Assembly: GCA_025201805.1 (NCBI GenBank)
Contig: MU619253.1
Location: 250,202-314,201, forward strand
Direction: 5' to 3'
Origin: Parasitella parasitica NRRL 2501
Lineage: Eukaryota > Fungi > Mucoromycota
Length of the DNA stretch: 64,000 nucleotides
Shown one piece after another: positions 1,580 to 55,967 of this stretch; the stretch's first letter is position 1; every line of letters starts with the position of its first letter. Below the pieces are notes generated by a model. The model worked only from the letters and a program-made list of their open reading frames with translations, ran no database searches and was not told the DNA's origin. Made by a program: the position numbers and the translations under genes.

Positions 1580-1702
1580 CTGCTCTTTCTGCTTTTTTCT
1601 TTTCTTTTCTTTTTTTTTTTTCCTTCTCATTGTCTTTTTTATTATCCTCGAGAAAAAAAAAGCGTCATTGTGTTTACATCAACAAATTGATAATATCTTT
1701 CC

Positions 1703-5652: not shown

Positions 5653-5701
5653 ATAACCAAACTAATACTTATAATATTATACACTTTAACGCGCACACAA
5701 A

Positions 5702-5760
5702 CACTCACTCTCTCACTCACTCACTCACTCACTCACTCACTCACTCACTCACTCACTCTC
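5702..5760. repeat. (CACT)n microsatellite in the RasGEF 3' region
   Basis: Tandem CACT units seen directly. Confidence 0.9.
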
Positions 5761-8902: not shown

Positions 8903-8908
8903 ATAAAA

Positions 8909-10590
8909 TTACATTTGATGGAGGAGCAGAGTTGCATCATAAACTATGTACAATTTACGACCTTCTCTCAGGATTTCATCTGCTTTTGATAGTGATGGCT
9001 GTACAGACAAATATACTGGGTTAATGCAAGCACGCACACACATACCATGTAAAATATATTACACTTACCAAACAGGGAGTGCCTTTCATTTCTTCTTCTT
9101 GTTGCTGCTGCTGCTGCTGCTGCTGCTGTTCGTTTTGGTAGTTAATCCAAGTTGCAAGAGCCTCCTTAACCAATGAGTCGGGAGCTAGGGCGAACTTTGC
9201 ATCGTCTTGATGGTGGTGGTGGTGCTGCTGCTGCTGCTGCTGGGATTGATGGGGAATCATGAATGTAAATCCAAACCGCTTCTGTTCCTCCGATGCCTTG
9301 ATTGTGAGCGAAGCAATGACTACTTTGAGCAGCAGCTTCTGTTTTCCCGTTATGGAATCGTAAGTTTTGTAGAGCAAAAACGACGAAAAAGAAGGAGAGG
9401 GAGGAGGCAGTGTGATAGAGTTGGTTTTCGTGATGGTATATTGGTTTAGCTGGTATGATCTTTTTAGCAATCCTTTAATGCTCGAGTGTGCTTTCTAATG
9501 TGCATGTATAAAGTGTCAAAACCAATGTCTCTTTCAATCCATCTTAAATGTGGCAGACAGCAGCACTAACCTTATGTACGTGTATAATGTGTGGCTGTAG
9601 AGTTAAATCTAAATCGGCCTCTGAACTTATCTCTCGGTCAAACTGGCTCTGCGGTTGGGGAGAGCTGGGCGGCGTAAGTAATCCTGCATCTGATGATGGC
9701 TTCTTGTTATCAGGTGGCAGTAATTTCACTGCATTCTGACCGATAGTGTCACTTTTTATGCTGCTGGACTCGATAGGAGTCATTGTTTCTTTGGAAACGG
9801 CTTTTTCAATTTTGAATAGAGAAGCATCCCTACGCACAGCAACATGGATTGTCGCTGACTGTGTGATCTCCTCTTCATCGTCGTCTTCGCTATCGTCCAA
9901 GCTTACGCTGTTATGTTTGGGTGGCAGCGGCGAGAATGAGATTTGCTTCTTTCTGAAGGCTGGTTTTACATGGAACGTTTTATGGTCAAAGAGAGAGTCA
10001 GGGGAGGAGGGCCGTCTGCTGTTGATGGCTGGGAGCGAGTCAGACTTGAATTGCAATGATGTAACTCGGTCGATTATTCTGTATGTATGTCCATTGTATG
10101 TATGATACCGAGCAGGCGCATCTACCATGTAGTAATGTGTCATTTTAGATACTTTAAAATAAAATCGACTCCTTAAAATTTAGATCATACCTGACAATAG
10201 CACAATAGGCATCAAGTCATCGCCACATTGGCTGCCACCATTGTTGGTTGCAATTGTTGTATTATCGCTGCTGCTACTCTGGCTATAACAGCTGCTTGAA
10301 TTGCTACGATAGTTGTACTGCTGCAGACTCCACATCGAGCTCTTTCGATCCATCGTCTTTACAATGCGTACATCAAAGTCAGATCTCTTTTTCTCTTGCT
10401 GCAACGAGTCCAACTTTGACTGGATGACTTTAGACATCTCAATGACTTTGCTATATCTGTCTCTGTCTTTCTCTGATTCTAATTGTCTCGCCAGCTTGGA
10501 TAGCTCTCGTTCCTGGTGCTGAATTGACGATAGCAAATTGATTTGCGAGCAAATGTCGTGGGTTTGTAGGTCGACTTCTTCTTGGCCCAT
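8909..10590 (-). CDS. Hypothetical protein (N-terminal coiled coil, Ser/Gln-rich linkers, globular C-terminus), 4 exons
   Basis: ORFs 10180-10590, 9544-10143 and 9021-9470 linked by short introns; terminal exon YLSVQPSLSKADEILREGRKLYIVYDATLLLHQM* ends at 8909. Confidence 0.75.
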
Positions 10591-13240
10591 AATCGTTTTC
10601 TTGTTTCTTTCTTTTTTTTTTCGATTTTTTGTTTATATTTGGAAACGAAAATAAAGAAGAAAAAAGAGGCTCAAGCGCTTTTTTTTTGGCAAACAAATAA
10701 TGGCACAAAAATTAAGGAGTAAAAGAGAACAAGGGGAGTTCTTGTTAGGCAACTGTGTAGACACATTTAAAGCTTATATAATTCACTGTCATAAGGACGC
10801 CCCTCCAGTCTCCCCTATGAATTTGATTTCTGTACATGATGTTTGTCAAGTAATATCTTTACTCGAGAACTATTGTTAGTTTATGTGCATCAAAAAAAAA
10901 AAAAAAAAAAAAAACTATTGCATTTTGCATTTCATGTGTACAGCTGCAATTGGGTTTCTTGTTGTTTTTGGCATATAATAATTGTTATTAATAGAATACA
11001 AGTGTATAGCTCTCGTTTGCATATTTACTATACATACACTGGGATAGTGGCAGTGTTTATCTCAAGCAGAGATATTGTAAATGGTGCTAATTCTTACATT
11101 CTGATCATCGTTTATTTATACAACATGTATGTATAGAATCGTGTATGGTCATATATATATAAAGCCCCACTTGTTAATTTACTTCATATACATACAACTT
11201 ACCCCTTTTTTCGTATTGTGAAAATTCTGATTTTTAGCAACTACATCTTTGTTATAGCACTACCCACAGTTTTGTAGTGTATACTCAACCACTCCTCTTT
11301 TCTATAATAAATATTACAGGCATCATTTCTCCTGATCAGAAGTGAAATTAAAATTCATTACTATAACAATATATGTATACAAATATATTAATGATCGCAG
11401 AGATAAAAATCATATAGGCGCTCAAAAAGCTTGTCTGACGACCTCGCGGAATAGTGCTTATTTCTTAGTATATGGACTATAAATCATAGGATAAACAATA
11501 GGTTACACCAAGCACTTTTGCATCGCACACATGTGAACAACGGATGAAAGCATCGCCGAGAAGCAAGAAGGAGGCGGTGGTAGTTGGCAATGTGGCCTCT
11601 GTCAAAACTCAGTTGCTTTTGCCAAAAAGACGAATACAGCCCCCCCTCTGCGCTTGGCGCTTGGTGCTACGTGATGGGCATCGCCAATGAAATATGCACA
11701 TAGTTCTACAGCATCACACTGCTGCAAAAATTCTGAAAGATCCACAAGTGGGCTCTTTCCCTTCAATACAGCCTTGTGGTCAAGTAGTTTAGTCTCAGAG
11801 CAGCCATTAGAATACGGTACTAGTTTCAATCTTGATTGGTAGATACGCACATACTTTAGCACGACTTGATTACTTTATTTTTTATTTTTTATTTTTTCGT
11901 TTGAAGCGGCACAGGATGTCTGAAAGCTCTTTGAAGTATCTGAGATTAGGGGAAAGACAATGTTATGTGTGTATAATTTATTGTTCTCTGCTGTAATCGG
12001 ATAAATGGCTGGGCTGCACAACCCAAAAAATACACGTTTATGATAACCCTGACTCAGAGACAAGCGCCAAAAAACAACATACATCCCATGTTGTCATGTC
12101 ATAATCCATTGAGGAATATTCATAAAACATAGTTATCAGATGAAAACTAGAGCGTAATGTCAACAAGAGCGACACTACACTTTGATTATCCATCTTTGTC
12201 AAGAAAATGGTTTACCTCTTCTGATGCAGCTCCCTTGAGGATAATTCCAGGGATTTGCAAATGTCGGACATGTTGATATCTTTTGTTGGCAGATGTGTAG
12301 CTTAGCGTGCTTTTTCTGGTACTCCTTACAGTCTTGCACTTACTCCTTACAAATCGGTGATGTCTGATGGCGTGTTGGTATACATCTCACGAAATGATGC
12401 CACCGCTGAGGCCAACTTGTGATGGTGTTTTGCGAGGAAATTGTCGTGTCATGTAATGGGTCAAGCAATTTTTTTTTTTTTTTTTTTTTTTTACTACAAT
12501 GTCTTTCGGTAAACATACAAGAAGTGAACTTGCACATTGTTTCCATTGTTACTTGTACAAGTTGAGCTTTCTGCTTGATTTCTATCATTAAATCAAATAG
12601 AGTAGAGTCAATTGTGGCATCTTTGCCGTATCATAAATACCTGGACGTTCACTTTTGCTGTGGCTATTTCAGGACTAACAAAAAGACATTTGACCTTTAT
12701 TATAAAACATAAAAACATAAAGAAAGGGGGGGGGGGAGAATAGTCTGTAGCAAAGTTTGAGCTCAAAGACTTTTTCAGTAGGCAACAAGCTTGTCTTAAG
12801 GAACGAAAGGCGCTCTCTTTATCCTTGTAACGTTTGACTACATGTCAAAATTTCTGCCAGGTATTTTTTTTTTTTTTTTTTTTTTTNNNNNNNNNNTAAT
12901 TGTAAGGTTTGATTAAGCTGCCTCATTCTTGAACATTGCTGATTATATGTAAGCCCAGGAAATACATCTAGTTTTTAAGAATTTTCTCGTACTACCCATC
13001 TTCCAGTCCAGGGGCAAAAATGTATGAAAAAGAAGCATGTTGTGCTACAACATGTGCCTGGAGAGCTGCTTGCGTGGAACCGGAATTGAGCCATGTAATA
13101 ACGTATGATGGTGTGCGTCTAAGGTATGTAGCTCTTGTTCCGTGCAAGCCGATAGAGCATACATGAAGATTATTATTGGATAATTGCTATTTTATAATCG
13201 ACATAAGTTTATTTTCGCTTTTATAGGCTAAGAGGGGGGC

Positions 13241-32187: not shown

Positions 32188-33382
32188 TTATGCGGATTCT
32201 TCGTTGTGGAATTCTTTGGCAAACGTTTCAGCAACAATCAATGGGAACACGAGCGTAGCATCAGCATAAACCTTGCAAGATCTGCTATCAGCACGGATTT
32301 TCCCCCAAGATACAGCTTCATCAGGGCGAGCGCCTGCATCGCTACCATCAAACTCCTGCCCAGTGTTGATATAGACAGCATAGTCAGCCCCGTTTCTCAT
32401 TAAATTGGCGTTGCAAATATGATGCTTGATAACACCACCACCCAAAATAATCATTCCAGTCTTCTTGGCAAATACAGCTTGATTGTTCATGGCACGGATG
32501 TCAGCGGCAATGTCGATGACGAGTCCAGGGTTTCTGTAGGAATGGAAATAGATCATATCGCCCAAAGAACCATCAGTAATGGCAGGGGAAAAAACGGGAA
32601 TCTTGTTTTTGGAAGTCCAATAGTAAATGCTCGATTCGTCGTTAATTTCATTACCAAGACGTTCGATCAAAGTGGAAGGTGTCCAAACGATTCCTTGACT
32701 TTTTTGCTCTTCCAGCATTTTGTCAAAAATAGGGATGACCCAATCCTCAAATTTACAATAGTTGTTGTTGGGCACCAGCAGATTGCCAATTCGATTCAAA
32801 CCCTTTTTACGAAGATCGCTGCCCTTTAATGCAAATTCGCCGAGATAAGTAGGAGCAAGACATTTGATGAAATCTTCCTCTACGCCGCCCGCAGACGCTA
32901 CAATGACATCTACCATTTTGTGCTGGACTAAAAACCGAATAATCTCTCGCAAACCTGAAGACACTAAATTGGATGTGTAGCCCAAAAAGATTTTGCATTT
33001 CGTCTTTTTGCGAACTTCAGGATCGAGGTATTCTACATTTTCGTCAGGAGCAGCAGCCTCATCAGAAAGGCGCCATTTTCTCTATATAATGTTGTTAATA
33101 ATCCATAGTATTTTNNNNNNNNNNNNNNNNNNNNNNNNNNNNNNCAGTATTGATACTTGTTGATGCTACCATTTCCTTGATGATTTCCATAGCCTCGCCG
33201 AGACTGCTGCCTTGATAACCGATTTGTTTGTAAGATCCTAATAACTGGGAGAGTGTCAATTTCTTGTTGAAATCTGGGCCTTGAATAAGGACAGAGCCTG
33301 TAGGCATTTCAACAGATTCAACAAAAACTGCATTCAACGCAGCAGTAGGTTGTGCTGCAGTGTTATTTTCGCTACTTGACAT
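32188..33382 (-). CDS. DYS1: Deoxyhypusine synthase, 2 exons (intron contains an N gap)
   Basis: [69 protein letters not shown]. Confidence 0.97.
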
Positions 33383-35444: not shown

Positions 35445-36755
35445 GTTTCAAAAATCGAGATTGAAAAAAGTAAAATAACAAGCAAAGAGAATCGAAGAAA
35501 AAAAAAGAAATGGAATTCTTTATTCCCCTTTTCTTTATTATTTTAACTAATATCATATAGTTTATTCCTCACTCCCTTCATCTCCATAAATCGATTAAAC
35601 CTTTAAAAAAACTAAAGAGATTAGTAAATCATTGCCTTGTGTTTATGCTATGAGCCATGCGTACGTATATCGCTAGCTGGTATACCTCATTCGTTTGAAT
35701 TTGCTCAGTTCTTGTCAACTCGAAGTGTTTGTTTGCATTATACGGTATTGAATTGCATGACAAGTAACAAAAATCAACTGTTGGCACGTAATTCTATTTG
35801 ATGCGATATTACTATTAAAATTCTTTTTTATCTAAGTGAAATAGAAGTGGTAATCTTCGTTAATTCTGCTTTATTGACACAAGCAAGGTTACCTAACAGA
35901 TAATCCACTAACTATCGGTCAGTTTGTAGTATGAATATTTGTTGGAGTTTCTTTACTCACAGCAGGAAACCCTTTTTTTGTGTTAGACTTTTGATGTATG
36001 TAGTCAAATTATACAAATTTAATTGGCCAGAGCCACCACCACCCCCCTTTTTTTTTGGCCCATTATCAGGTTGAATGAATAGATTGGCCTCTACTGCAGA
36101 CAAGTGGGTAGGATGGTCCTACTCAAGACAAGTGGGTAGCATATACTGCGTGTATAATTCGTTCTTTTTTTTAGGCTTTCAATTGCATTTTGTGCTGGAG
36201 CGTGTAGCTACAGAGCACTGCATTATATTCGATGGTTGTTGGAAACTGCTAATAATGTGTTGTGATTTTCAAGCCCATTGTATTAAAAAAGTTACATCGT
36301 TGCAACAGCTGTGATATTTTGAAGCCATATTAGCATGTGTTTATGCGACAAAGAAAAGATTTCCTCCTAGTTTTGTTGCATCATATAGACTGACGTTCGA
36401 TAGCGTCAATACCCTTACTTATTTAAGTACGCATCACATTTTAACTAGTGCTCGTTCTTTAAACAAAAGACTATTACAATTGTAATAAGTTTACTATATC
36501 GTTGTCCCTACTTAACTGTCTTAAATCGCTGTCTATCCTGATATAAATGTTCTTGCATCAAAATCTTTGCAGATAAACAAATGTTTAAATAAATACGTAA
36601 ACTGGGTGGCATACATACAAAAGCACTACTTTTTGATTTGTTACAGAGCAGTTTCGTACACTTCTAATTGCAGCGTAGAGTCGTATACGCACATCTTGTG
36701 ATGAACACCAATCGATTTTTAAGCTAACGTGGTGAGTCTGATTGACAGTATATAA

Positions 36756-36827
36756 CATGACTAGAATTAATTTGCTTGGGCTCTTTATCAGAAGCTATTT
36801 AAACTTGCTTTAAAAGGTCGTATAAAT
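36756..36827 (+). promoter_or_regulatory. Paralog 1 promoter: CATGACTAGAATT plus TATAAAT
   Basis: CATGAC at 36756, TATA at 36821 (65 bp apart); same layout upstream of the other two paralogs. Confidence 0.65.
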
Positions 36828-36865
36828 GGAGCAACTATTTCTATCGTCTACCAACTGTACAAAGA

Positions 36866-37471
36866 ATGAATTTTTTTAATCCTTTATCATTTACTATGAA
36901 AGATAAGTGTGTTACACGTGCTTACTTCCCTGCAGAAAATCCGTATTCCGTTGTCATTGCAAAATCTGAATTCTCAGGTCTTATCCCCACACACGGTGCT
37001 CCCTCTAGTCTTCTTCTGATTCTTCGTGAACAGTTTCCAAAAGGTACCGCTAAAATCAATCGCTCTGCACCGCAAGGCTGTAACAACTCTCAATCCTATG
37101 AAGATTACATTGAGGTTACTTTTAAAGACGAATTTTCACGACAAATTGCTCTGATGACGCCTTTCCAGCTTCAAGGTCGATGGATTAAAGTACACAGGAC
37201 TATAAATGTGTCAAAAGGTGACCTTTACCAGGTTTTTGTTAGTGGTATTCAACTATTAGATAATCCTTCTACATACTGGCAAGACGTTTTCGTGCACTTA
37301 GAGAAATTTGGCACTGTTGACTCGCTTCATCTTCACAGTACAGACAAGGGGGTTAGCCGCCACAATGGTGATGGATGTGCTATGCTGTTTACTCTGCCTG
37401 ACCGTATAAAAGATATATCTAATCACCCTATACTCAAAATATCTTACAGGAACCACCCTCTAAGTAGCTGA
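36866..37471 (+). CDS. Tandem paralog 1 of 3; LINE ORF1-like tandem RRM-type protein, intronless
   Basis: 201-aa ORF sharing PYSVVI, LREQFPKG, YIEVTFKDE, KFGTVD, HLH, GDGCA, HPILK with the next two ORFs. Confidence 0.8.
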   Translation: MNFFNPLSFTMKDKCVTRAYFPAENPYSVVIAKSEFSGLIPTHGAPSSLLLILREQFPKGTAKINRSAPQGCNNSQSYEDYIEVTFKDEFSRQIALMTPFQLQGRWIKVHRTINVSKGDLYQVFVSGIQLLDNPSTYWQDVFVHLEKFGTVDSLHLHSTDKGVSRHNGDGCAMLFTLPDRIKDISNHPILKISYRNHPLSS

Positions 37472-37886
37472 ATTCTATAAAAAAAAATCATGTCGAGGGG
37501 AGAAGAAGAGGCATTACATATGATGCATTTCATAAAATAAATACATATATACAACACACATAAAGAATTTACCCATAGTATAGCAAATTTAGATATATTT
37601 CAAACGAATATATAGGATATCTAGGAATATCAAAAGAANNNNNNNNNNAAAAAAAAAAAAAAAATTGGCAAAAACTTCCCGTTAATACAACATTGGTATT
37701 GTATGTATACATGCACTCACATCCAATACCTATTATCACCTTACAATTACATGTATTTCTATTGTAGTAAATTGAGCTTATCCTGTGATAAAGATGTACC
37801 AGAAGTGTCTGCATTTCCCCTATATTATTCATGTGATATTAGATATGGGATTTATATAGGGTTGTAAGTGATCATTCCACCGGTAT

Positions 37887-37954
37887 CATGACAAATTAAA
37901 GCTCATGGCTTCCTCGTATAAATTTTCGACACTCTTTTCCAATGTTGTATAAAT
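37887..37954 (+). promoter_or_regulatory. Paralog 2 promoter: CATGACAAATT plus TATAAAT
   Basis: CATGAC at 37887, TATA at 37948 (61 bp apart). Confidence 0.6.
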
Positions 37955-38010
37955 AAAGCATGTTTGCAATCTTCATTATTCTTTCGCACTTTTCCATAAA
38001 CTTTATATAA

Positions 38011-38601
38011 ATGACTTATTTCGATTTCAAACGAGATTTCTTTTCCCTCAAAGTTAAAGATGACTGTCCTAATCCTACCATATTTGAAGGCAGAAAACCC
38101 TACTCTATAGTCATTGAGATAGTAGAATCCCACTATGTCACTAGCTATATTGACGTCTCTGGCTATCTTGATGTCCTTCGCGAACAGTATCCCGAAGGCC
38201 TTGTTATTCTTACTCGTTATGCAGCTGCCGGGAAGTATATTGAGATTGGTTTTGGTGACGAATCAATGCGACATGCTGCTCTGTCAAAACCACCTATGAA
38301 AATTCGCGATCAACTAGTCCACGCAATAAAGTCTACATATTTGGGTGACAGGCTAGTCTATCGACTTAAAATCAAAAATATTGACTCCCTTGGGCGTCCA
38401 TATGAGTATAGGAAGTGGATTCTCGACCATTTGCAAAAATTTGGAACTGTTGAAGACCTCCATCTTCATTACACTGAAGGAGGTAATTGGTTTTTAGGTG
38501 AAGGTTGTGCCATTATCGTCATGTCTCCTGACGATAAACACCATGTTCTCAATCATCCAATACTCAAAATTTCAGTCGAGGAGTACAATGTGACCAGATA
38601 A
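38011..38601 (+). CDS. Tandem paralog 2 of 3; LINE ORF1-like tandem RRM-type protein, intronless
   Basis: 196-aa ORF; PYSIVI, LREQYPEG, YIEIGFGDE, KFGTVEDLHLHYTEGGNWFLGEGCAII, HPILK. Confidence 0.82.
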   Translation: MTYFDFKRDFFSLKVKDDCPNPTIFEGRKPYSIVIEIVESHYVTSYIDVSGYLDVLREQYPEGLVILTRYAAAGKYIEIGFGDESMRHAALSKPPMKIRDQLVHAIKSTYLGDRLVYRLKIKNIDSLGRPYEYRKWILDHLQKFGTVEDLHLHYTEGGNWFLGEGCAIIVMSPDDKHHVLNHPILKISVEEYNVTR

Positions 38602-39637
38602 TGATAAGCGTATATGATTTAGAAACTCAAAGACTTGTAGAAAAGTTGCAAAATAAATAAACATTGTTATGTCAATATTTTATGTACTATGCAATACTAT
38701 GAATGTATTGAGCGTGATGGATAAATTCTTCATCACAAATGAGAAGCGCATAAATTAAAGTATATGTAGAAAATGGCTCCATATAATATCTGTAGACATT
38801 AATTGCGCTCGAAAAAGCCGTAATTTATTTCAACGCTGATTGTATTATAAACAGTTTAAAGGTGTTCTCCATCCATGTTAAGAGGCGGGAGAAAGAAAGC
38901 ACCTTTAGGATTTTAAATGAGTAACTCAACATCGTTTATGTTGTCTCAAGTACAGCTTACAGCTGATATGGCTGTAACATAACGATTTTGCAATTACATT
39001 TTCACACTAGCCATGTATCAACTTTTCGAACCTCTGATCAATTAAATTACAATAAAATACATCCACTCACTGGATTTTGTGTTATGTAATTGCTAATGGT
39101 ATAACTCAGGTTTGCTTGCGGTTTGTTAAATTTTTGACTCAATCTCAAACTTGAGCCCTGAATAACAAGAGATGTATAACTACAAATTAAAAAGGGCGGC
39201 GATCACAAAGGGGTGATTTAACATATGAAGATCGTCTTGCATGTTATGCAATTATCTTATATTTGAATTGCTGTGGTATGTTTTAGAAGCTATAAGAAAC
39301 ACAGAAGCTTGGCAATGTATATTTATGTATCTGCAATTCCTCTAGTCGGTTTTGATCTACCATACAATGAAAAGATTTGCATAATGACATGTATCCTGTC
39401 ATCAGGCTGATCTTTTGGAAGATCAAACTGCAGGTAAATTGCATGGGTTTTCATATGCTAGCTATACTCTTCATAAATTAAGCCGAATTGTTGATCGTGT
39501 TACTATATGCGAGTAGTGACGAACACCATGTTATGGTCATCTTATGATAAGCAGCTCTCCAGGACTCTTGGATACAATGTATTACATTCATATGAAAACT
39601 GTTTCGGTACAACCTTTGACAGCTCTATTTCATGTAC

Positions 39638-39708
39638 CATGACACGAATTGACGTTTTTTGAGTATTTGATTAAAATGTTTCTGCTTGATTTCAAAGGTT
39701 ATATAAAT
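39638..39708 (+). promoter_or_regulatory. Paralog 3 promoter: CATGACACGAATT plus TATAAAT
   Basis: CATGAC at 39638, TATA at 39702 (64 bp apart); upstream TTGACAG and AAAGGT before TATA shared with paralog 1. Confidence 0.65.
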
Positions 39709-39785
39709 GTGAACCTTGTTCTCTAATTCGTTCAAACATCACTTTACCGCTAATTTTTTTCACCATTCATCGACTACACAAAAAA

Positions 39786-40424
39786 ATGAGCCAGCCTGTT
39801 AATGGCATCTCCTTTATCAACAAGGATGAGTGCCCAGAGCCCGATTTATTTCAAGGATCAAAACCTAACTCTATCATCATTGCAGAATTTGAGTTCTCAG
39901 GTCTCCGGTTTCGACAAGAAGGTCCGACTAGCTTTCTTGGTATCCTTCGAAATCAATTCCCTCTTGGAAAAGTTATAATAAAGCTCCCTATAACAAATGT
40001 CAAAGAGCAGCCAAGAACAACAAAAATGTATATCGAAATAGGCTTTGAAGATGAATACTCTCGGGATCAGGCTCTGTCAAAACCCTTCTCTGTTCAAAAG
40101 CGGCTCATCAAAATGCACAAAACGATATTGCTGTCGAATCGAAAGGTTTATAAAGTTTATATAGAGAACATTGAACAAATTGGATTTCCAGTTTCATACA
40201 AAGGAGAGGTTCGCACATACTTGAAAAAGTTTGGTGACGTTGAAGATGTCCATCTTCACTACACGAGAGATGGTAACTGGTTTACAGGCGAAGGCTGTGC
40301 CATTATAGCTATCTCTTCTGACAAAATCCAGCAAATCCAGCAGCATCCAAAACTTACCTTTATGTTCACGGAATACCCTATAAATGGCCAATTCTTCCGA
40401 TATGATTCCCCAAATGTAAAATAA
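39786..40424 (+). CDS. Tandem paralog 3 of 3; LINE ORF1-like tandem RRM-type protein, intronless
   Basis: 212-aa ORF; PNSIII, LRNQFPLG, YIEIGFEDE, KFGDVEDVHLHYTRDGNWFTGEGCAII, HPKLT. Confidence 0.82.
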   Translation: MSQPVNGISFINKDECPEPDLFQGSKPNSIIIAEFEFSGLRFRQEGPTSFLGILRNQFPLGKVIIKLPITNVKEQPRTTKMYIEIGFEDEYSRDQALSKPFSVQKRLIKMHKTILLSNRKVYKVYIENIEQIGFPVSYKGEVRTYLKKFGDVEDVHLHYTRDGNWFTGEGCAIIAISSDKIQQIQQHPKLTFMFTEYPINGQFFRYDSPNVK

Positions 40425-40619: not shown

Positions 40620-41304
40620 GGATATTTTTCATTATTCCCTAAGCGTGGATTAAAACTAGAGATGTATAAAAGTTGATGATCAGAATTTGAAGGGCATATT
40701 TGGTACAGCTTTGAAAAAAGAAGATGATAAAATACTCTACTCCTATACACAAAGGTGCTTCTTTAACCTATTTGATTTTAGAAAGTTAAGAGTTTAGAAT
40801 GAAGTACCTAAAAACTCTGTGAAAACCTGTCCACAGGAAAAACATGAGAAACTCTTTTTTTTTACAGTTTTCAAGAACTGTAGAGCCTTCCTCAAGAAAA
40901 ATTTAAAATGTTTTTGAATGGAATATATACTGACGGATATACCTGTCAACTTCTTTTTGTCGTAAAGCTAAACAGTTCTTACCAATTGATGATATTCCAT
41001 TGCAACTTGAAGTTTTGAATTATGATAAGTAGAAAAGTATTTTCGACCATGCACGCTTGATCCAGGGAGGAAGGATGTCTTTGTCTCTTACCATGGAAAT
41101 ACCGATATTAGACGCTTATCAAACGCCGAATACTACAACATGGATGGAAATAAAAACAGAACAAGACCAAAAAAGCAGCCGAATATAGAAGAGATCGAAA
41201 CGCATACACTTACTCCTAAAACGGCTTCTGCTGAAAGATACATAGTATGCATACTGTGGAATCGGTATAAATTGTTATATGGATTCACGAAAAAAAAACT
41301 ATAA
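40620..41304 (+). pseudogene. Fanzor1 (eukaryotic TnpB-like nuclease) relic, WED to RuvC-I region
   Basis: Frameshifted pieces FSLFP, CIKVDDQNLKGIF, FFNLFDFRKL, putative intron 40804-40867, MFLNGIYTDGYTC (TDG 40929-40937); open frame 41029-41304 VEKYFRPCTLDPGRKDVFVSYHGNTDIRRLSNAEYYNMDG...IEEIETHTLTPKTASAERY (DPG 41059-41067). Confidence 0.82.
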
Positions 41305-41645
41305 TAAAAAAACAATAATGTCAACTTGATAAAGGTATAGGTTTTTATTATCAAATCGACAGGTGTATAAAGCTCCAGTTCATCTACTGGCCAGGTAGAT
41401 GAACCTTTATATTAAACTGTGGGTAAATGTTCTACTCTCGTAATTTAACATGTACGACAATACTGCGTAACTAGCACCTTAGCTTTGTGCTAACTAACAT
41501 ATCAGCAGACTCAAGATAACTTAAATCTATTTGAGTGAGGAGATAGACTTTACTCGAGGTACCCTGATCAATCTTCTATGCGAAGATTGTTAATATCGAT
41601 CCATAAGCGTATATCATTTCTTGTGTAGTCTTATCCAGTCTACAT

Positions 41646-42105
41646 TAATAGTACATACCTGAGTGTATATCACTTGGTATTCATCTTAGCATATATCGGT
41701 ATATGTAGCATGTCTATAGCATGTCATAAGCATATCTATAGCATTGCACATATTGTACAAGTCTGTAGTACATAATGTATCTGTAGCTAGTATCATGGAT
41801 ATAAGTATATGTCCTATAGTGCGTATCTAGGAACTGGGGATACGCATCTGAAGCATAAATCTTATATAGCATAAGCCCGTAGCATATACTAGATTTAGTA
41901 AATGTCTAAGGCTCGTGTCGAGATATAAGTATCAGTTTATAGCGTCATCCATCCTAATGGTGCCATCTCTAGCTTACATCTTACATAGTATAAATCTGTA
42001 TTGCACATCTTATTATCTGTGCGCATATGTAGTCTATATCAATTTAAGGTAACTGGATGAATCTAGAAGTGGAATGAAGATCATCATAGTGTATGTATTT
42101 CACAC
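41646..42105 (+). repeat. Left arm of 460-bp inverted repeat
   Basis: Reverse complement of 42552-43011 with about 10 mismatches by manual comparison. Confidence 0.97.
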
Positions 42106-42550
42106 ATACAGTAAATTCTTCAATATTTGGAAACTTTTCTTGATTTTTACGGCCCTGAAACATCAAGAATAAAGTGGTCTAACTATGTGGCATCTCAAAA
42201 AAGAATTGAAAATAGACATGGCATAAATGCTATTGCTCATTGTTCTAAAATTATCATGTTACACAATAGATCACACAAAGGGATGAATTTGAAACGTCAA
42301 AGGTAAGCATGACAATGTTTATATTCTCTGCTCTTTAAGCAAAACTTCTTTCGTAAATATGCGATGTTGTGTGAAATTACTAGTAAAAAATATATAAAAA
42401 AATACTTTTTAAAACTGTTATTTATTTTTTAGATGAAGATCATCAAAATGTCATTTAAAAGCTATCTTTATACTAATTTTCCAAGGGTAAATGATTATGG
42501 ATATGAACCAAAATTATATTGGATTATTCATCCAGGACGTCTTGGCAGCA
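42103..42550 (+). pseudogene. Fanzor1-like relic (post-RuvC-I helices, possible RuvC-III remnant) forming the loop of the inverted repeat
   Basis: HIQ*ILQYLETFLDFYGPETSRIKWSNYVASQKRIE at 42103-42210; GT-AG intron-like 42303-42432; QDVLAA at 42533-42550 resembling RDVxAA. Confidence 0.6.
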
Positions 42551-42551
42551 A

Positions 42552-43011
42552 GTGTGAAATACATTCACTATGATGATCTGCATTCCACTTCTAGACTCAT
42601 CCAGTTACCTTAAATTGATATAGACTACATATGCGCACAGATAATAAGATGTGCAATACAGATTTATACTATGTAAGATGTAAGCTAGAGATGGCACCAT
42701 TAGGATGGATGACGCTATAAACTGATACTTATATATCGACACGAGCCTTAGACATTTACTAAATCTAGTATATGCTACGGGCTTATGCTATATAAGATTT
42801 ATGCTTCAGATGCGTATCCCCAGTTCCTAGATACGCACTATAGGACATATACTTATATCCATGATACTAGCTACAGATACATTATGTACTACAGACTTGT
42901 ACAATATGTGCAATGCTATAGATATGCTTATGACATGCTATAGACATGCTACATATACCGATATATGCTGAGATGGATATCAAGTGATATACACTCAGAC
43001 ATGTACTGTTA
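42552..43011 (-). repeat. Right arm of 460-bp inverted repeat
   Basis: Reverse complement of 41646-42105. Confidence 0.97.
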
Positions 43012-43205
43012 TATCAATAACATAGCAAGGTCTCACATCAGGATCTCAGATCAGTCCCAGGGTCTTACAGTAAATCATGGGTAGTCATGCAGCTAGACAG
43101 TGGAACCCTAGTGTAATGAATGTGTATATAATACACCGAGAGATGTATTATGAATAAAAGTGTAAATCTTTGGCAGATTTATTTTATCAGACTTCTGACA
43201 TAACA
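43007..43205 (+). mobile_element. Short LTR-like unit (about 199 bp)
   Basis: Starts TGTTATATCA, ends TGACATAACA (10-bp terminal inverted match, 1 mismatch); internal TATATAA and AATAAA; no target-site duplication visible. Confidence 0.55.
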
Positions 43206-43276
43206 CTGTGGAGCATTACATGGTTTATGATTATGCAATGCTTGAGTACGCATGAATCACATGTGATCTACACGCT

Positions 43277-43854
43277 GACATAATCTCGAACTGTGTTTTT
43301 GTGGATGAAAGTGGCTTCGATATGAATATACGTCCACCTTCAGCTTGGTCAACAGTTGGCACGCCAGCGATTGCTGAAACCAAGTCAACTAAAGCAGCGT
43401 CTTACACCATACTGGGAGCCATCAGTGCACACGGGGTAGTCAATATTGAGCTCAGAGTAGCAACAAAGCCCAAATAACGTAAAAGCAGACACCAAATCCC
43501 AAACAAAGAAAGGGTAAGGCTTTAGATGAAGTGGAAAAAACCCCTTTTATGAGTGGGTTTTATATTGTTATGGATAATTCACCTATTCAGACGAGCAAAG
43601 ATATCGATTAATTGATCATTTCTAGGGGCTATAGAAGCACACATCTTTTACCCTATCCTACCGAGCTCAATCCAGTTGAGCAGTTTTGGTCTGTTGTCAA
43701 AAACAAAGTTTAGGGAGGGGGTTTTTCTGATGATGAGAATCTCAAAACAAAAATTGCAGCAACCTGTAACAATGTTCCTATTCAGCATTTGAGAGCTTTT
43801 ATACAACACTCTTGCAATCAATTCGATAAGAGTAGAAATAAAAAACACATCTAA
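43277..43854 (+). pseudogene. Tc1/IS630 (DDE_3) transposase pseudogene, catalytic domain
   Basis: NCVFVDESGFDMNIRPPSAWSTVGTPA..TILGAISAHGVV, YIVMDN (43570), PYPTELNPVEQFWSVVKNKV; internal stops, frameshifts and deletions. Confidence 0.9.
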
Positions 43855-44203
43855 TTTATAAGTTTTAGTTGATATTACAAAATAACCGCAATTTAATTTC
43901 ACAGAAGACTGCACGTTCACTGTACCGTATACCATCGCTACATCAATTTGGAGAGGCGATGGACGTCCCAAAGTCTTCACAAGACAAAGGGCCATCTCGA
44001 ATTTGGTTGGCACATCCCATCCCGATGGGGCGTGTCGAGACAAGTTCAGAAAGGCTTCTTTTCTTGCAAGTCGACCTAATTCTCGTTCCTCTGTATTCCA
44101 AGTTAGTTTCTTCGACTGTATTAATCTTGTTTTACTTAATGAACCACCACTATAATACCTCGATTGACAAACGACAGCGTTTAAATGCATATTAATCCTT
44201 ACA

Positions 44204-44262
<59 letters not shown>

Positions 44263-44746
44263 NNNNNNNNNNTATATGTCATGCAGCCCTTAAATATCTC
44301 TCTGATTGAGGTTGGTCTCAAGGTAAACAGGTATAGCTATAGCTTTGTAAAAACAAAATTATTTCATACAACAATGCTCCCTATTAATGAAATGTACATC
44401 ATGGTTCGTATCATGTGCGCAATGATAACATAACCATAAAACATAACGCGATGTCAACCTGATTTCATAACTTCTTAGTCTTTCTCATCAGTGCATATAT
44501 GAAAGGGATATAAAATTTCTTATTTTGTTCTGTCACATTAATGCTGCAAAGCAGGGTTCAATGAGCTCATTCAAATCACAAGACAGCTACAGAGTACTGT
44601 GCACGGTTATGAAGACAATGAGTGAAATAGATGTACTAGGATCAACCATTGAAGCTACGGACCATTGAATCAGGTCAAAAAGTATAAATACAAGTGCCAA
44701 GCCATGCAAGTATATGTCTCCCTTGGTCTACTTTAAACACAAAAAA

Positions 44747-47250: not shown

Positions 47251-48166
47251 GATAGTTGAGCCTGCAACATAACATTCTAACTGTATTTTTTTGAACATCA
47301 TGTTTGGCGGCAGGCGTACAATAAAGCTAAGAAAAGAAAACCTTCTAGTTTTGGATGGGAGGTTGTGTTTGCAGCCAGTTTTTACCTTTGTTGGTCCAAA
47401 TTCTCAATTCATCAATCTACCGTATCCCTAGCCTGCCAAAGCAAGCTGTAGCTGCAATTTCAGGAATCGCTGGCTTGTTTTCAATGTTTGGATTATGTCT
47501 CGTTGTTGTCTTGTCTTGTCTTTAGTCACCGATTTTCCTGATGTAACTGAAAATACATTGCATTTGGCAGGGAACTGTGGTCAGAGTTATGCCCCACTTT
47601 TTGGTTATAATTATTGTTGAGTGCATGCATCATGAAAGTAAATTGGCTGTTCAAGTGCTGATTTGTCCGCAAGACTCACGACTGATCTGACATTTGTTCT
47701 TCTTCATCATTAATAGTGGTTGATATGTATTGTTTTTTAATAGAATAAATCGAAAATGTGAAGGTTTATACATGATTTCTAACTTCAGGGCTCTAACAAT
47801 AACGAGATTTCGTGGCAAGTCAGGATTTCAGTTTTTACCTTCTGAATTTGGAAGAAATAAAATATTTTTTTTTAGTTGTAATACTGTGCAGGACCCTAGA
47901 TCTGCTACACCTACTTTACTTTATGTTAATTGTTTCCCTGATCTGTTTCTTATTGGCCTTTCTTTATTATTATATTCACAAATGCAAGTTTAGCAAAAAA
48001 AAAAAGCAATTATTGAGGTCAGGTTTGTTCCATCAAGCTAAATAAAGTGTAGCTATAATTCTTGACTTGAGATGAATAAATTGTATCAGGAATTCTATCA
48101 ATGCACATATACGGCAAGCAATAAAAAGCGGTATGTATTGATACAAGGTAACGTAGGTATTGTCAA

Positions 48167-49709
48167 TTAGTTATTCTGGAAATCAGTATTCAGGGCTTGA
48201 ATGGCTGAGATTGTACCAAAAATTAAGCCTACTACACCAAGCAACAGAGTTAAGAAAGCTAAAATGTACTCGTACCACACCTTTCCTCTAATTCCTGTTA
48301 GCTTGTAGTAGAAGACAACAGGGAAGATAAAAACCAGCGCACAGTTGGAAAAGGCGCCCAACAAAGACATAAAATCTCCAAAGAAAGGCACAAAAATAGC
48401 AATAACAGCAACAACCACAATGAGAGCACCACGGAATATCAAGCGAAGTGTCCATTCAAAAAAGAAAGACCTATGCTCAGAGTCGATTTTGAGCATTTTT
48501 TCCACATCTAGAGCAAATGAAATCAACAAGATTGGGGTGGTCAGGATAAGATGGATGGTGATGATAATGATAGAGGCGAATTTGGGCCCTTTGTTGGTAT
48601 CAGATAAGGACTCGTAAATGGGAGAAAGAACATCTGAACCATATACATAATATCCAGGCACAGCAGCCAAAAAGTAAAGGATTACACAAAATGTGAGGCC
48701 TGCTGTGATGACCTTGTTCCAGTCTCGTCTATTGCGCATTGATTGCTCGACATGAGGATAAACAGGGTTGCCGCCTAAAGTGTCGCATATCAGCATATGA
48801 ATGAATACATACGCACACACACACACATACACAGCACACTTACCAAAACTAAAAGAAATTGAGCTGAGAGCAATAGGAAACATATTCCATATAACACCAT
48901 CATGATGTGAGTCCGTGTGATCAGGTGCTTCTTTCACCGCGACAACCAATACGATCAGGATAACAACCACGGTGGACAGCATCCCAAATACACCGAGAAC
49001 GGTCATTTCCTTCAACGACCTAAAGAATAGGAAGGGCACAGCGACGATACAGGTACAAATAATGACCCAAATGGGAAATGTCAATTCTGCAGAGGATCCT
49101 TTTGCTACGGTGTGCAAATTCAGACCCGACAACAGCAAGTAAAGCACGGGCACACCTACCAGTGTGATGGCAGTGAAAAAGAAGGCTATCCAGCCGCCCA
49201 CCTTGCCAAATGCTGCAGTCGCCACTTCTTGGTACGATGATAGACGAGTTTTGCCATCGTAATACATGGAGCGGATCAGTAAAATACCAGTATCTATAAC
49301 AACAGGTTTAGCTGTAAATCCTATGATTGTAAGAGTATTTACATATTGATAAAATCCAACTAAGACAAAGGATAAAAAGGCCAATCCAACCACCCTGTGC
49401 TAAAGCATATGGCAAACCAAGAGCGCCTGTGCCAGCGACCACACATATAACACTGCACAATGCACTTATACTTGAACCCTGTTTTGATCTGTCGATGCCA
49501 AATTCAAAATGTTCGTTTTCATCTTGTTCTTCGTCTTCCGTAATGACTTCCTCCGAGACTATATGCAATACATGTTAGATAGAGGCCGAAAAGATAGTCG
49601 ATCTGTAGAGGACATACTAACCTGGAGGAGAGGAGCATTCCTTTTTATCGCTCGAAATAGGCGCAGTGTAGCTTGTTGTCGGCTTATTCAATAATTGACC
49701 CTCGTTCAT
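48167..49709 (-). CDS. Amino acid/auxin permease family transporter (Aa_trans, Avt1-like), 4 exons
   Basis: VICVVAGTGALGLPYALAQGGWIG, SFSFGGNPVYPHVEQSM, PFFGDFMSLLGA; start MNEGQ at 49709. Confidence 0.94.
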
Positions 49710-50390
49710 TTCGTATAGTTGTATTGGTGAAAAGAAGAAGAAGAAGAAAAAAAAAAAGAGAGCATTTTTCTCCCCGGTTCATAACTTGAAAATTTTGATT
49801 TGTCTCGCTTTTCACTTTGGCACTGATGTTAGAAATGAAAACCTTCCAAGCGGAGACATTGACCTGACTGAGACACGATTTATCATTTATATGATAGCCA
49901 TCATTTATTAATAATGCAACTCTACATTTTGGAGCTTTATTAAAACTGGCATTGAAAGAATCTTTATATTTGCGTTGACGACAGCTGTCTGATTCATGCT
50001 ACATTTTGCCCTGTCTGGTGGTAGCAATCGCTTTTCTCGATCTGCATCGCATTTAACTGCGTACGGCCATTTTTTATTTTCAGCATGCTGGTACGCCTTT
50101 TCATTCGGTCGAAGCGTGGAAAAATGTAGGCGGGATTTACTTTATTGTGTTACTACGATTGTTCGCTTTATGACATAGATCAGATAACTACTGTACTTGC
50201 GACTTGTTGGAAAGGGCTGTGTACACGCATGCTACATCTTTTGATATACGTTTATTACACAAACATTTAGCGAGAGTGCATCATAAACAAACTGACAATT
50301 TATATTGATATTTTAATATTAAGAGAAGTAGCAGATCTGTGTCGCTTAACCCCACTCAAAACTTACTAAAGCAAACTTTTCAAAGCTGTC

Positions 50391-50421
<31 letters not shown>

Positions 50422-50775
50422 NNNNNNNNNNTAACGTACATAACACTATATCCTTTGTGGCACTTGTGAAGAGATCCAAATATAGTAAATATAATGGACA
50501 CTGCTAATTGACAGCAGATAAACAATACCGGACTTTCCTATCGAAATTTTAGTATTCAAGATACTGAATGCTTTATAACAAAAATTAATGCCATTTATTT
50601 GCAGCGAAAGCGAACACAAAAGTATCTCATTTACTCAATCCCAATTTCGTTTTATAGCAATGGATTTATGAGTTTATTGTCTATGTGCAAATGTAGGTAT
50701 CAATACTGTACACGTAATCACATTTTATTACCATAGCCTTGGTCGAATAAAATTATTTTGAAAGTGGAATAAACA

Positions 50776-51400
50776 GATTTCTATGATTGCACGACCATGT
50801 CTTGTTTACGAGATGCGGCCAAGCAGCTTTTTGCCAACTTAACAACAAACATGTATTCAAGAAGAGCTTGTCAGCAAGACTCGAAAATTGTCGTAAATAT
50901 CTTGCTGAGAATCCATTTGTGTTGAAATAGTACTTTGAGGCCTAGAAAGCCGTTCAGGAAACATCAAAAGATAACTCGTACGCCTCCTCGTCAATGTATA
51001 AATTATTCAGTGAATAGTTTGTTTAGAGTTTTGACACAAGAAAGGAAGTGCATCGTTTGCCAAAGATCTGGACTAGCAAGGACCCATTCCAGAGTATTGC
51101 CTGAAAACTAGTGCTAGTCTACTAAACGCCTCGAGAATTACAATACCCAAAATATATAAAGAGTTCAGCATCAAGCCATAGGTGAATCAATTGAGGATTC
51201 CTTGTGCTGAAGATTGATGAAGACAAGTCAACGATCAACTGTTTATCATTTGTTCAACCAACAACAAATACGGCTCATGAGAGGAAACAATGCAAAGACC
51301 AGATGAAACAAAGGGGCCTTGGTGTGCCTGAATGCCAATAGCTTTAATTGGGGAGGGGGGGTTTAAACCACACAGTCAGGCTAATGAATATGCTAATGTT
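50776..51400 (+). pseudogene. Heavily deleted Fanzor/TnpB-like relic (N-terminal helix plus RuvC-II/zinc-finger remnants)
   Basis: DAAKQLFANLTTNMYS...ILLRIHLC* (50812-50925); VLKIDEDKSTINC (DE 51216-51221); KGALVCLNANS (51310-51342). Confidence 0.5.
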
Positions 51401-51892
51401 TTATCGTTTCTCGACTTCATAAAACGCAGGCATTGATGAACAGCCAACGGTCAACTACTTGTTTACACCCGTCAGGCATACCTTCAGTTGATTATGATAT
51501 AGACACAATGAAAAGAAGCAGGAGAAGACTCACAAGATGGCACACTGTGTAGATAGATACCACTAAACAATAAAATGGAATAAGCTTCCTCTGTGATGCA
51601 CATGCACATATTCTTTTAATAGCATTAGATTCAATTTTAAAACTGTCTTTTAGATGTCCCCTTTATCCCCCCCTGGCCAGCTTATTCTTTGTTTAGCCAT
51701 GTATCTATAGCATCAACAATAATGAAAGCAAGTGTCATGAAGGATGATGTCTGATGGTAAATGAATGCTGCTGTGGATGCTGTTGACAACATATTTTTAT
51801 TAAATAGTGTGATTAGTAGTATAATAGATAACAATAAAAAAAATATAAACAAATCTATTCTAGTATACTCCTATCCCTCTGCGATTGCTGCC

Positions 51893-51898
<6 letters not shown>

Positions 51899-51942
<44 letters not shown>

Positions 51943-51980
51943 TTTCTCTCTCTCTCTCTCTCTCTCTGTGTCTGTCTCTC
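51899..51980. repeat. Compound (TG)n(TC)n microsatellite
   Basis: Seen directly. Confidence 0.95.
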
Positions 51981-52020
51981 GTGATTATAATTTTTCTCCT
52001 TGTTATAGTGTAAATTTCAT

Positions 52021-52441
52021 TTATTGCTGTTGGTATTGTTGCTGTTGTTGCTGTTGTTGCTGTGGCAGGAGGGGAATAGGCGTAATGGAACGGTGTTTGT
52101 TGATATTGTTGGCAGATGACATTGCACTTGCAGGTCTATTTTGTTGTGGTGGTGGTTGTGTCATCATGGCGGCATACAGATTCCCATTACTCATATAATT
52201 GGGTAACTGATAAAAGGATGATTGAGCTGAATACATGTTGTTGTTCATTGGTGGCACAGAAGATCTGCCATTACTGTAATAGTCATACATGGAAGGAAGA
52301 TTAGGAGTATATCCATATGGCAGCTGTTGCTGGGCTTGGCCTGATCTATTTGGGCTGGTATGCTTTTTATTGTTGGTAGTGGGCACAGATGGATTCATAT
52401 ATACTGGGTGGTGCATCTGTTGTTGGTATTGGTGGTGTTGT

Positions 52442-52479
<38 letters not shown>

Positions 52480-53510
52480 CTGATGGTGTTGCTGCTGAAT
52501 GTGCTGAAAGTTGATATTGTGTGTTCCTGGTTCAGGCAGTTTACCTAGCAACCCTTCAATTTTGACTTTTCCTGGGTTCATTTTTGGCTTTTGGCGCTTA
52601 GCCTCGGCTTTTTCTTGTTCCCTTTGAATCAGCAGATCCATGCCTGACATGGTGCTCATGCGTTGCTGCTGCTGCTGATGCTGCTGCTGCTGCTGCACTG
52701 GATGCTGTTTTTGATTTCTCGGCTGCATGGCATGCTGCTGTTGTTGCTGTTGAAGATATTGAAATTGAGCCAATTGTTGCTGCTGCTGCTGTTGTTGATA
52801 CTGTTGGTACTGATGCATATGATGTATAGCAGGGGGGAAATCTAAATTGGTGGAAGAGTGCCTCAAGTGCTGGCCAATGACTTTGTCATCGTCGTCGTTG
52901 TCGTCGCCGTCGTCGTTCTGACTGTCTTTGATGAACCTTGCCAAGTCATCGTTGGAAACAGAGCGATGGTTGTTGCTGATGATGACCGAGGAGATGTTTG
53001 TACTTGCGTCAGAATGCTGCATCACTGAATGTTGGCCTGGATGCTGCTCAAATTGCTGGGGTAGAGTAGGTGCAGATCTATTTATTCTGTACGGCAAAAC
53101 GCCCTGCGAAGGTCTCTTCATGGCCTGATGGATAGGTAGCAAGTCATCTTGATCGTCTTCGTCTTCGTCCTCATCATCCTCGTCTTCGTCTATGGAAGAG
53201 TGAGCAATGTTAAAAGTTATGCTAATATGCTTACTCCGAAATGAGGGGCTGTTAGAAAGGGGTTCTTACCTGTATTGTCTTCTTCATCACTTGGTAACGG
53301 AATTGTCGATTTTGGTCTTGTAATGACGATCTTTTGCTTGCTGTATTTCTTTTGCTTGTCCTTGACGCTGTCTTGTTGGTCGCTGTTGTTTGACGAATGG
53401 GCGGCGTCGTCATCGTCATCGTCATCATCTTCATCATCGCTTGGCATGATTTTAAGATTGCGGTTGCTTGTTCTCTGGTGGTGACCTAGATTGAAGAAAT
53501 GAGAATGCAT
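52021..53510 (-). CDS. Hypothetical Gln/Asp-rich, largely disordered protein, 2 exons
   Basis: ORFs 53217-53510 and 52021-53142 joined by an intron; one ordered block MSGMDLLIQREQEKAEAKRQKPK..KIEGLLGKLPEPG. Confidence 0.75.
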
Positions 53511-53945
53511 GCCAGACGGTTTTTCAAGCTAAACACAAACCAGATAGCCATGCTTGATGGGGCGAGGTATCGAAATTTATGCTGCGATCAAAGCTTTCAG
53601 TAAGTTCTTTTATTGTAGACATTTCAGAGGGAAATTGAGAGAAAAAGAAAAAAGATTTTTTTTTCACTTGACATTGCCTTTAATTCTTTATTTATTTATT
53701 TATTTATTTTTTATTTTTTATTTACTATTTTTCTTGCATTTTGTCCAAGTAAACAAAACGACTCCTGAAGACAAAACAGTTAAAAATAGATTGTATTATG
53801 TGGTGGATGTAAAAGACTCCAATAGGAGAGAAAGTGTTGCAGTACATTGAAAGAGTCACTCAAGTGGCTTGATGCGCACAAATCAACATAATGAATAAAA
53901 ACTTCTCGCTTCACTTTAGGTATTCCAACTTCTTCCGCTCGAATC

Positions 53946-55967
<2,022 letters not shown>

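Follow-up and report, generated by a model that had tools for sequence, protein, structure and literature searches.

A tandem gene trio probably derived from the two RRM-like modules of a LINE ORF1 in Mucoraceae

The locus: three reading frames, their promoters and their conservation

Three co-oriented open reading frames (ORFs) reside between positions 36866 and 40424 of a 64,000-nt stretch of contig MU619253.1, hereafter called the window, and encode small proteins which most probably descend from the RNA-binding part of ORF1, a component of long interspersed nuclear elements (LINEs). Gene A (36866-37471), gene B (38011-38601) and gene C (39786-40424) are all on the plus strand, are open from ATG to stop, and encode proteins of 201, 196 and 212 aa, respectively. 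A is predicted to be a tandem-RRM (RNA recognition motif) protein lacking zinc knuckles and derived from LINE ORF1, B and C are its paralogues, and C is the most constrained of the trio. The preliminary description of this DNA, made from the letters alone, had reported three intact, intronless ORFs of 196-212 aa in the same orientation, and the observation stands. The motifs which it quoted, P[YN]S[VI][VI]I, LR[EN]Q[FY]PxG, YIE[VI]xFxDE..R..AL, KFG[TD]V[ED]x[LV]HLH, G[ED]GCA and HPxL, are all present in the protein alignment, in which A, B and C are colinear over the whole length, 35-38% identical, and share 49 invariant columns. At the local composition (36% G+C), the probability that a 200-codon frame remains open by chance is ~6e-7. 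The gene models of the trio, and those of related short genes in Parasitella and Mucor, are single exons throughout. The spacer between A and B hosts an assembly gap (37639-37648), located 168 nt past the stop of A and 362 nt ahead of the ATG of B. Because the gap is intergenic, none of the three frames depends on it. The A-B order is ungapped in Parasitella, where the alignable blocks are 433 nt apart versus 346 nt in the window, and thus no large piece seems missing at the gap.

Each ORF is preceded by a promoter module on the plus strand. The module of A (36742-36826) is made by TTGACAG (36742-36748), CATGAC (36756-36761) and TATAAA (36821-36826), blocks which are invariant with respect to Parasitella, with an offset between the last two of 65 nt. 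The module of B (37887-37953) includes CATGAC (37887-37892), TATAAA (37948-37953) and an extra TATAAA (37917-37922), and that of C (39616-39707) TTGACAG (39616-39622), CATGAC (39638-39643) and TATAAA (39702-39707). Both are conserved in Parasitella, and have offsets of 61 and 64 nt, respectively. Upstream regions are 78-83% identical in the two species (83% for C), and carry long invariant blocks. In five of the six promoters of the two trios a distance of 61-65 nt separates CATGAC from the downstream TATAAA; in the promoter of Parasitella B, the exception, the TATA position of the alignment reads ATAAATAAAG. TTGACAG is found just ahead of CATGAC in A and C. In the window CATGAC has a frequency, on either strand, of 0.44 per kb. 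The one LINE copy checked has no CATGAC/TATAAA module in its 5' region, hence there is no sign that the promoter is LINE-derived. The shared module rather argues that a gene already provided with a host-type promoter was duplicated in tandem, at the DNA level, to give A, B and C.

Contigs of one sequencing run, X1, whose RNA type is merely guessed, match at 100% identity the intervals 36852-37469, corresponding to ORF A, and 37998-38653, corresponding to ORF B. They begin 13-14 nt before the ATGs of A and B, 26-50 nt after the TATA boxes, about 30 nt in the case of A, and leave the A-B spacer, the B-C spacer and ORF C with zero coverage. This suggests, within the bounds of a single run of guessed type, that A and B are transcribed. 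Short X1 contigs, again 100% identical, match the intervals 36300-36528 and 40868-41029, two stretches not conserved in Parasitella. They may represent unannotated transcripts, or DNA carry-over.

At the DNA level, the region 36300-41200 matches itself alone in the 32.8-Mb assembly. In Parasitella parasitica (LN728825.1) the locus has the order deoxyhypusine synthase (DS), VMA3, A, B, C, F-box-like gene, Aa_trans, a gene of 485 aa and kinase. The Parasitella A, B and C genes are all intact (205, 199 and 212 aa), and the encoded proteins are 66%, 68% and 79% identical to those of the window, C being of the same length. Neighbouring loci of the two species exhibit 72-86% nucleotide identity. In Mucor lusitanicus two genes of the short family lie in tandem beside the orthologous Aa_trans gene, a gene of 476 aa and the kinase, and the right flank of the pair is that found in Parasitella and in the window (48159-55961). 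A solitary gene, the third of M. lusitanicus (P0008, 206 aa; 10001-10621 of its locus), has as neighbours on the same scaffold a vigilin-type KH-domain gene and an OTU gene, which implies that the family has been dispersed by at least one move off the array. In Parasitella the B-C spacer measures 3.3 kb (1.2 kb in the window), and holds an additional gene model of 283 aa (7552-8519 of the locus, minus strand) without Pfam matches.

Between orthologues of the window and Parasitella the dN/dS ratio is 0.31 (0.29-0.34) for A, 0.35 (0.33-0.39) for B and 0.12 (0.12-0.17) for C, with dS values of 0.5-0.9. The bootstrap 95% intervals are 0.21-0.46, 0.22-0.53 and 0.07-0.19, respectively, and none of 500 replicates reaches 1. 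Neighbouring genes gave 0.10-0.17 (Aa_trans exon) and 0.40-0.57 (F-box gene), with dS of 0.42-0.69. The estimates indicate that the trio is under constraint like that acting on ordinary genes. The status of host gene, already assigned to the ORFs in the preliminary description, is borne out by their single copy, by the syntenic orthologues next to VMA3, and by dN/dS values well below 1. Similarity to ORF1 and to RRMs was found, as detailed below, dN/dS is far from 1, and no multi-copy element surrounds the copies, all in keeping with that description. The evidence supports the notion that the three ORFs are conserved host genes, and not copies of a transposable element (TE).

Kinship with LINE ORF1 and point of truncation

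A profile of the trio finds nine further matches in its own 32.8-Mb assembly (E 6e-17 to 8e-8), most of which are in ORFs of ~500 aa where the trio-like part is followed by two CCHC knuckles. As an example, in contig C69 an endonuclease ORF (APE, PF03372) comes after an ORF1 of 498 aa, and after it an ORF with RVT_1 (1.7e-28) and zf-RVT domains. These elements match the architecture of Grem-LINE1 of Mucor, in which ORF1 carries zinc fingers, and ORF2 AP, RVT and zf-RVT domains (PMC7377519). Alignment of the short family to LINE ORF1 by hhalign (probability 99.8%, E 1.9e-28, 148 columns) equates trio residues 19-178 to ORF1 residues 77-224, and in the opposite direction a tblastn search with a LINE ORF1 of the same genome reaches gene B at E 3e-10. 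Trio proteins are 23-29% identical to present-day LINE ORF1 proteins. Homology between the trio and the RRM-containing part of ORF1 of a Mucorales non-LTR element, which normally continues into CCHC knuckles and an endonuclease-reverse transcriptase ORF2, is thus supported.

In the C69 copy (136000-145999, minus strand) ORF1, APE and reverse transcriptase (RT) correspond to 7860-9356, 7039-7854 and 3975-7157 of that stretch, respectively. ORF1 is intact, and ORF2 is split, since the APE ORF and the RT/zf-RVT ORF overlap in different frames. The ORF1s of contigs C57 and C69 are 98% identical, which suggests that this LINE family has been recently active. Mucor velutinosus hosts a LINE ORF1-like protein of 504 aa with a partly decayed knuckle region (KAK4509527.1, P0026); its record name, 'L-serine ammonia-lyase', is probably a misannotation.

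When short proteins and LINE ORF1s are aligned jointly, the former all terminate at the column which opens the first knuckle of LINE ORF1. The LINE sequence '...LTLTYTNMKP-SCSRCH' is faced by short ends such as 'FMFTEYP...', 'ISVEEYNVTR*' and 'ISYRNHPLSS*', and all three trio proteins stop, as originally noticed, just before the knuckle position. The C..C....H....C pattern is absent from every trio and short-clade protein. Searches of the 64-kb window by tblastn (E<=0.01) with LINE ORF1, APE and RT as queries retrieved no remnants of knuckle, APE or RT, in line with the reported lack of an ORF2 nearby, and no poly(A)-type element ends were found at the trio.

When 1.84 billion representatives were exhaustively searched with the profile, 46 proteins were retrieved. 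Relatives without knuckles, 170-236 aa in length, are encoded by three genes of Mucor lusitanicus, and are found also in M. plumbeus, M. bainieri and other assemblies. CCHC-bearing relatives range wider than the short family, and include proteins of Rhizopus arrhizus, Chlamydoabsidia padenii and several Mucor species. A maximum-likelihood tree, unrooted, was built from 34 rows and 174 columns, omitting ten fragmentary rows (P0031, P0033, P0037, P0043, P0044, P0046, P0047, P0032, P0036 and P0048). A branch with 97/99 support has on one side 15 knuckle-less proteins, which include the trios of both species and Mucor and Logan members, and on the other every ORF1 protein with CCHC, along with five short fragments of ORF1 which are probably decayed, among which the copy of contig C81. 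The tree does not reject a possible single origin of the 15 knuckle-less proteins. A, B and C each pair with the own Parasitella orthologue with 100% support, and the triplication is therefore older than the split between Parasitella and the species of the window.

The knuckle-less C81 sequence (5342-8788; ORF at 1414-2250, minus strand; P0016) encodes an ORF1-like protein of 231 aa, counted from the first ATG, which stops just ahead of the knuckle position and retains the LINE-type strand 'GRGFATI'. It nests within LINE clades on a long branch. Multi-copy repeats flank its core, which is itself unique in the genome. Either the decay of a LINE copy or a separate, more recent truncation may account for it.

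Predicted fold and rebuilding of the second module

The AlphaFold2 (AF2) model of protein C, obtained from six input sequences (pLDDT 78, pTM 0.72), features two beta-alpha-beta-beta-alpha-beta modules, spanning residues 29-115 and 120-196. Foldseek matched the model to tandem RRMs (hnRNP A2B1, hnRNP A1 UP1, HuR, Sxl and PABP) with E values from 5e-6 over 175-200 columns. According to VIA-align, module 2 matches single RRMs with Z 7-8.3 and rmsd 2.1-2.8 over 70-79 residues (best match, Z 8.3, rmsd 2.6, 75 residues), and RRM1-2 of HuR matches the C model over 149 residues. The two RRM-like modules of the preliminary description are thus recovered by model, fold search and structural alignment. 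Similarity to DUF4283, raised in the same description, did not appear in the Pfam scan. PP1, the only Pfam match of the trio, was discarded as not meaningful (E 0.05, below the PP1 cut-off). L1 ORF1p chains were retrieved neither by sequence nor by fold searches of PDB.

Across the two modules, the best-scoring solved structures are those of cellular tandem-RRM proteins such as hnRNP A1 UP1, HuR and Sxl (Foldseek E 5e-6 to 1e-4). The trio differs from them because identity is only 11-17%, Pfam RRM_1 is not matched, RNP motifs are non-canonical, and a direct link to a transposon protein exists. The nearest structural neighbour of the C model in ESM Atlas is a Mucoromycota CCHC protein cluster, and a cnidarian CCHC cluster of like shape is found among the neighbours. 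In the LINE ORF1 model two modules as in the trio (87-250) are followed by the knuckles, by an acidic region predicted as disordered, and by a confidently predicted C-terminal helix (426-470), none of which the trio has; knuckles and helix belong to every full-length ORF1p. The short family and LINE ORF1s cannot be told apart by the isoelectric points of their RRM regions.

Module 1 shares with LINE ORF1p residues S29, I32, L54-R55, E84, F87, R93 and A96-L97, and the sheet motifs SIVI, YIEIxF and R..AL. Canonical RNP1/RNP2 aromatics are lacking in the trio, where module 2 has G-E-G-C-A-I-I as its RNP1-like strand. In this module clade-specific replacements fall on the beta2 and beta3 strands. 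H156 replaces a glycine found in all 14 LINE sequences, and H158 is present in 10 of the 12 members of the closer clade, so that G-L-x-Y-T has become H-L-H-Y-T. In the RNP1-like strand the LINE sequence G-R-G-F-V-T-L has been changed into G-E/D-G-C-A-I-I, with C171 in the place of F in 10 of the 12 members. A novel N-terminal motif, KDxCPxP, provides C16, present in all 12. All six trio proteins have C16, H156, H158 and C171, and each of these four residues recurs in 10-12 of the 12 closer-clade members; LINE ORF1s exhibit at these columns G, variable residues and F. Given the alternation V155-H-L-H-Y, the two histidines would point to the solvent, on the side of the sheet opposite the hydrophobic core, and next to the third position of the RNP1-like strand. 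The Cys/His set would be located on the customary RNA-binding face or close to it, and may have taken the place, perhaps as a metal site, of the usual aromatic platform.

Origin, function and known systems

The trio most probably belongs to a host gene family, present in Mucor, Parasitella and the species of the window, which stems from the domesticated tandem-RRM module of a LINE ORF1. The donor ORF1 has the organization RRM-RRM-CCHC-CCHC plus acidic tail and C-terminal helix, as the ORF1p of Grem-LINE1/Jockey-like elements. The ancestral copy shed both zinc knuckles, the tail and ORF2. Tandem duplication of the gene, along with its TATA/CATGAC promoter, gave rise to A, B and C before the Parasitella split, and purifying selection since then has retained all three paralogues. 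The trio and the Grem-LINE1/Jockey-like ORF1p are homologous along ~150 residues across both RRM-like modules, and have like predicted topology. The trio differs by lacking knuckles, acidic tail, C-terminal helix and ORF2, and by having single copies at a fixed position, a TATA promoter of its own and a module 2 whose RNP1-like strand has been rebuilt.

The product would be a soluble protein of ~23 kDa with two RRM-like modules, predicted to bind single-stranded RNA, and RNA binding by the trio proteins is likely. According to this model, the proteins would work as RNA-binding or RNA-chaperone proteins deprived of the parts which ORF1p needs for a retrotransposition-competent particle, with a role either in host RNA metabolism, or in competition with ORF1p for LINE RNA.

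Several points weigh against this interpretation. The Pfam scan of the three trio proteins (E<=10) gave no RRM match, and a PDB sequence search with the family profile only weak RRM matches (Musashi1, E 0.04). RNA binding could be weakened or changed by the acidic residues and the Cys which module 2 has acquired at RNP1-like positions, and the putative Cys/His cluster comes from strand alternation, not from coordinates. As for expression, X1 is the only public run with this DNA and is stored as contigs, its RNA type is a guess, and ORF C is not covered. Mucor members form a polytomy relative to A, B and C in the unrooted tree. The direction of transfer from LINE to host, in turn, is deduced from the taxonomic breadth of the CCHC forms and the general RRM-CCHC architecture, the tree being unrooted.

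A functional refinement of the domestication model, which entails no separate origin, sees the trio proteins as LINE restriction factors, which would bind RNA of the Grem-LINE1 type or join ORF1p particles and, being devoid of knuckles and C-terminal helix, would poison ribonucleoprotein assembly or retrotransposition. By analogy with known systems this is conceivable, though unlikely. It would fit the motifs which module 1 still has in common with ORF1p, the retention of three paralogues, and the presence in the same genome of related LINEs in several near-identical copies (see the C57 and C69 ORF1s), as expected of recent activity. Precedents may be found in truncated Gag proteins. Ty1 p22 and Fv1 are host-encoded, truncated TE structural proteins which act by capsid co-assembly, and are either near to their target in sequence or fast-evolving. 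The trio is under purifying selection, and the likeness is an analogy only. With omega at 0.12-0.35 between the two species compared there is no sign of an arms race, which argues mildly against restriction. Restriction factors usually track their target, but the trio is old and of low identity to present LINE ORF1s. Moreover, the C-terminal helix missing in the trio may mediate, to judge from the model, the self-association of ORF1p. A complex prediction of protein C with LINE ORF1 residues 60-300, run without controls, gave a score of 0.00, which is no verdict and counts neither way. The control of LINEs in Mucor has been already ascribed to RNA interference (RNAi) (PMC7377519). L1TD1, a eutherian gene derived from L1 ORF1, is debated as RNA regulator or L1 repressor; a restriction role has been proposed for it, but human L1TD1 gave no L1 suppression in a reporter assay (PMC12129022). 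An extension of the same idea holds that the ORF1-derived array provides Mucoraceae with a protein-based control of LINEs beside RNAi, the proteins acting as decoys which bind Grem-LINE1 RNA without being able to package it, and a Cys/His site in RRM2, possibly binding zinc, taking the place of the CCHC knuckles. This is a doubtful conjecture.

Alternatively, module 2 might no longer bind RNA, and the Cys/His surface made by C16, H156, H158 and C171 would accommodate a metal or a protein partner, making of the trio proteins adaptors or regulators. The four residues are invariant in the trio and different in LINE ORF1s, and the predicted position of the histidines, opposite the hydrophobic core, is what such a surface would call for. 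Yet the geometry is reasoned from the sequence, Cys and His residues may be conserved for other reasons, and the sister clade formed by P0012 and P0057 has Y, not C, at column 171. Reasoning from the alignment, we regard such a role as rather improbable.

The opposite direction of transfer, namely the capture by a LINE of an old tandem-RRM gene of Mucoraceae, turned into the N-terminal half of ORF1, is compatible with an unrooted tree, which only tells the two sides of one branch. ORF1s are moreover described as modular and reticulate (PMC4120745). Yet the RRM-RRM-CCHC architecture is general among Jockey-like ORF1p outside fungi (PMC3905857), and the cnidarian CCHC cluster is alike in shape. 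CCHC forms are found in more Mucorales families than the short form, and the short genes are intronless. The capture is on these grounds very unlikely. The notion that the ORFs are TE remnants, or ORF1-only non-autonomous LINE derivatives intact by chance, to which their intronless structure, the tandem arrangement beside repeat-rich DNA, the homology to ORF1 and the nesting in LINE clades of other knuckle-less fragments, from this genome (such as the C81 copy) and from others, lend some appeal, is largely refuted by single-copy DNA, orthologous position in three species, omega significantly <1 between orthologues, promoters kept between species, and the lack of ORF2, knuckle or poly(A)-type ends in the searches described, and is hardly tenable.

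A domesticated LINE ORF1 module thus remains the preferred origin of the trio. The class of origin is already known from L1TD1 and from the EKA genes of powdery mildew, and the trio is an independent domestication in early-diverging fungi. The family comes from the RRM-RRM-CCHC class of ORF1, of which the two RRM modules alone have been kept. Similarly to the trio, L1TD1 is a host gene made from the RNA-binding part of a LINE ORF1 and conserved across species, but the event is independent, and concerns another kingdom and another ORF1 class: three tandem paralogues with two RRM modules each are found here. L1 ORF1p, in turn, consists of coiled coil, RRM and C-terminal domain (CTD). The EKA family (AVRk1/AVRa10) of Blumeria graminis also derives from truncated LINE ORF1, and has lost the C-terminal nucleic-acid-binding part (PMC4641428). 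Trio and EKA are alike in being fungal gene families born from a truncated LINE ORF1. EKA genes are effectors of a plant pathogen, count hundreds of dispersed copies with repeated origins within TE clades, and are under positive selection. In contrast, the trio genes are few, single-copy and syntenic, are grouped on a single side of a branch with good support, and evolve under purifying selection; by eye, the N-terminus of the proteins has no hydrophobic stretch.

The documented host genes of LINE ORF1 descent are few: L1TD1, a handful of captured exons of L1 ORF1 origin in vertebrates (PMC12129022), and the EKA effectors. A full-text literature search on Mucorales LINE1 domestication and Grem-LINE1 ORF1 found no description of a Mucorales host gene of this derivation. 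The trio is a clean case, since the donor family is still in the genome, the point of truncation is exact, synteny extends to at least three species, and three constrained paralogues share a promoter module. In Mucor lusitanicus centromeric Grem-LINE1 elements are under an RNAi control which has been studied (PMC7377519). Relatives of the trio reside in this genetically tractable species, and hence a role in LINE modulation or in host RNA metabolism may be directly tested there. For the same reason the family is of moderate to high relevance for research on the defence of Mucorales genomes, as it is for research on transposon domestication.

Besides the gap in the A-B spacer, five assembly gaps are found in the window (12887-12896, 33115-33144, 44263-44272, 50422-50431 and 54016-54025). 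A long stretch of T precedes the gap at 44263-44272, and the F-box-like gene lies shortly downstream. The DNA located 3' of the trio, from ~41247 onwards, is a multi-copy repeat with short ORFs only (41247-44500), of which at least 40 further genomic copies exist at 91-94% identity. It includes inverted repeat arms of 460 nt (41646-42105 and 42552-43011), which are 98% complementary and separated by a loop of 446 nt, and appears as a foldback-type element interposed between gene C and the F-box-like gene.

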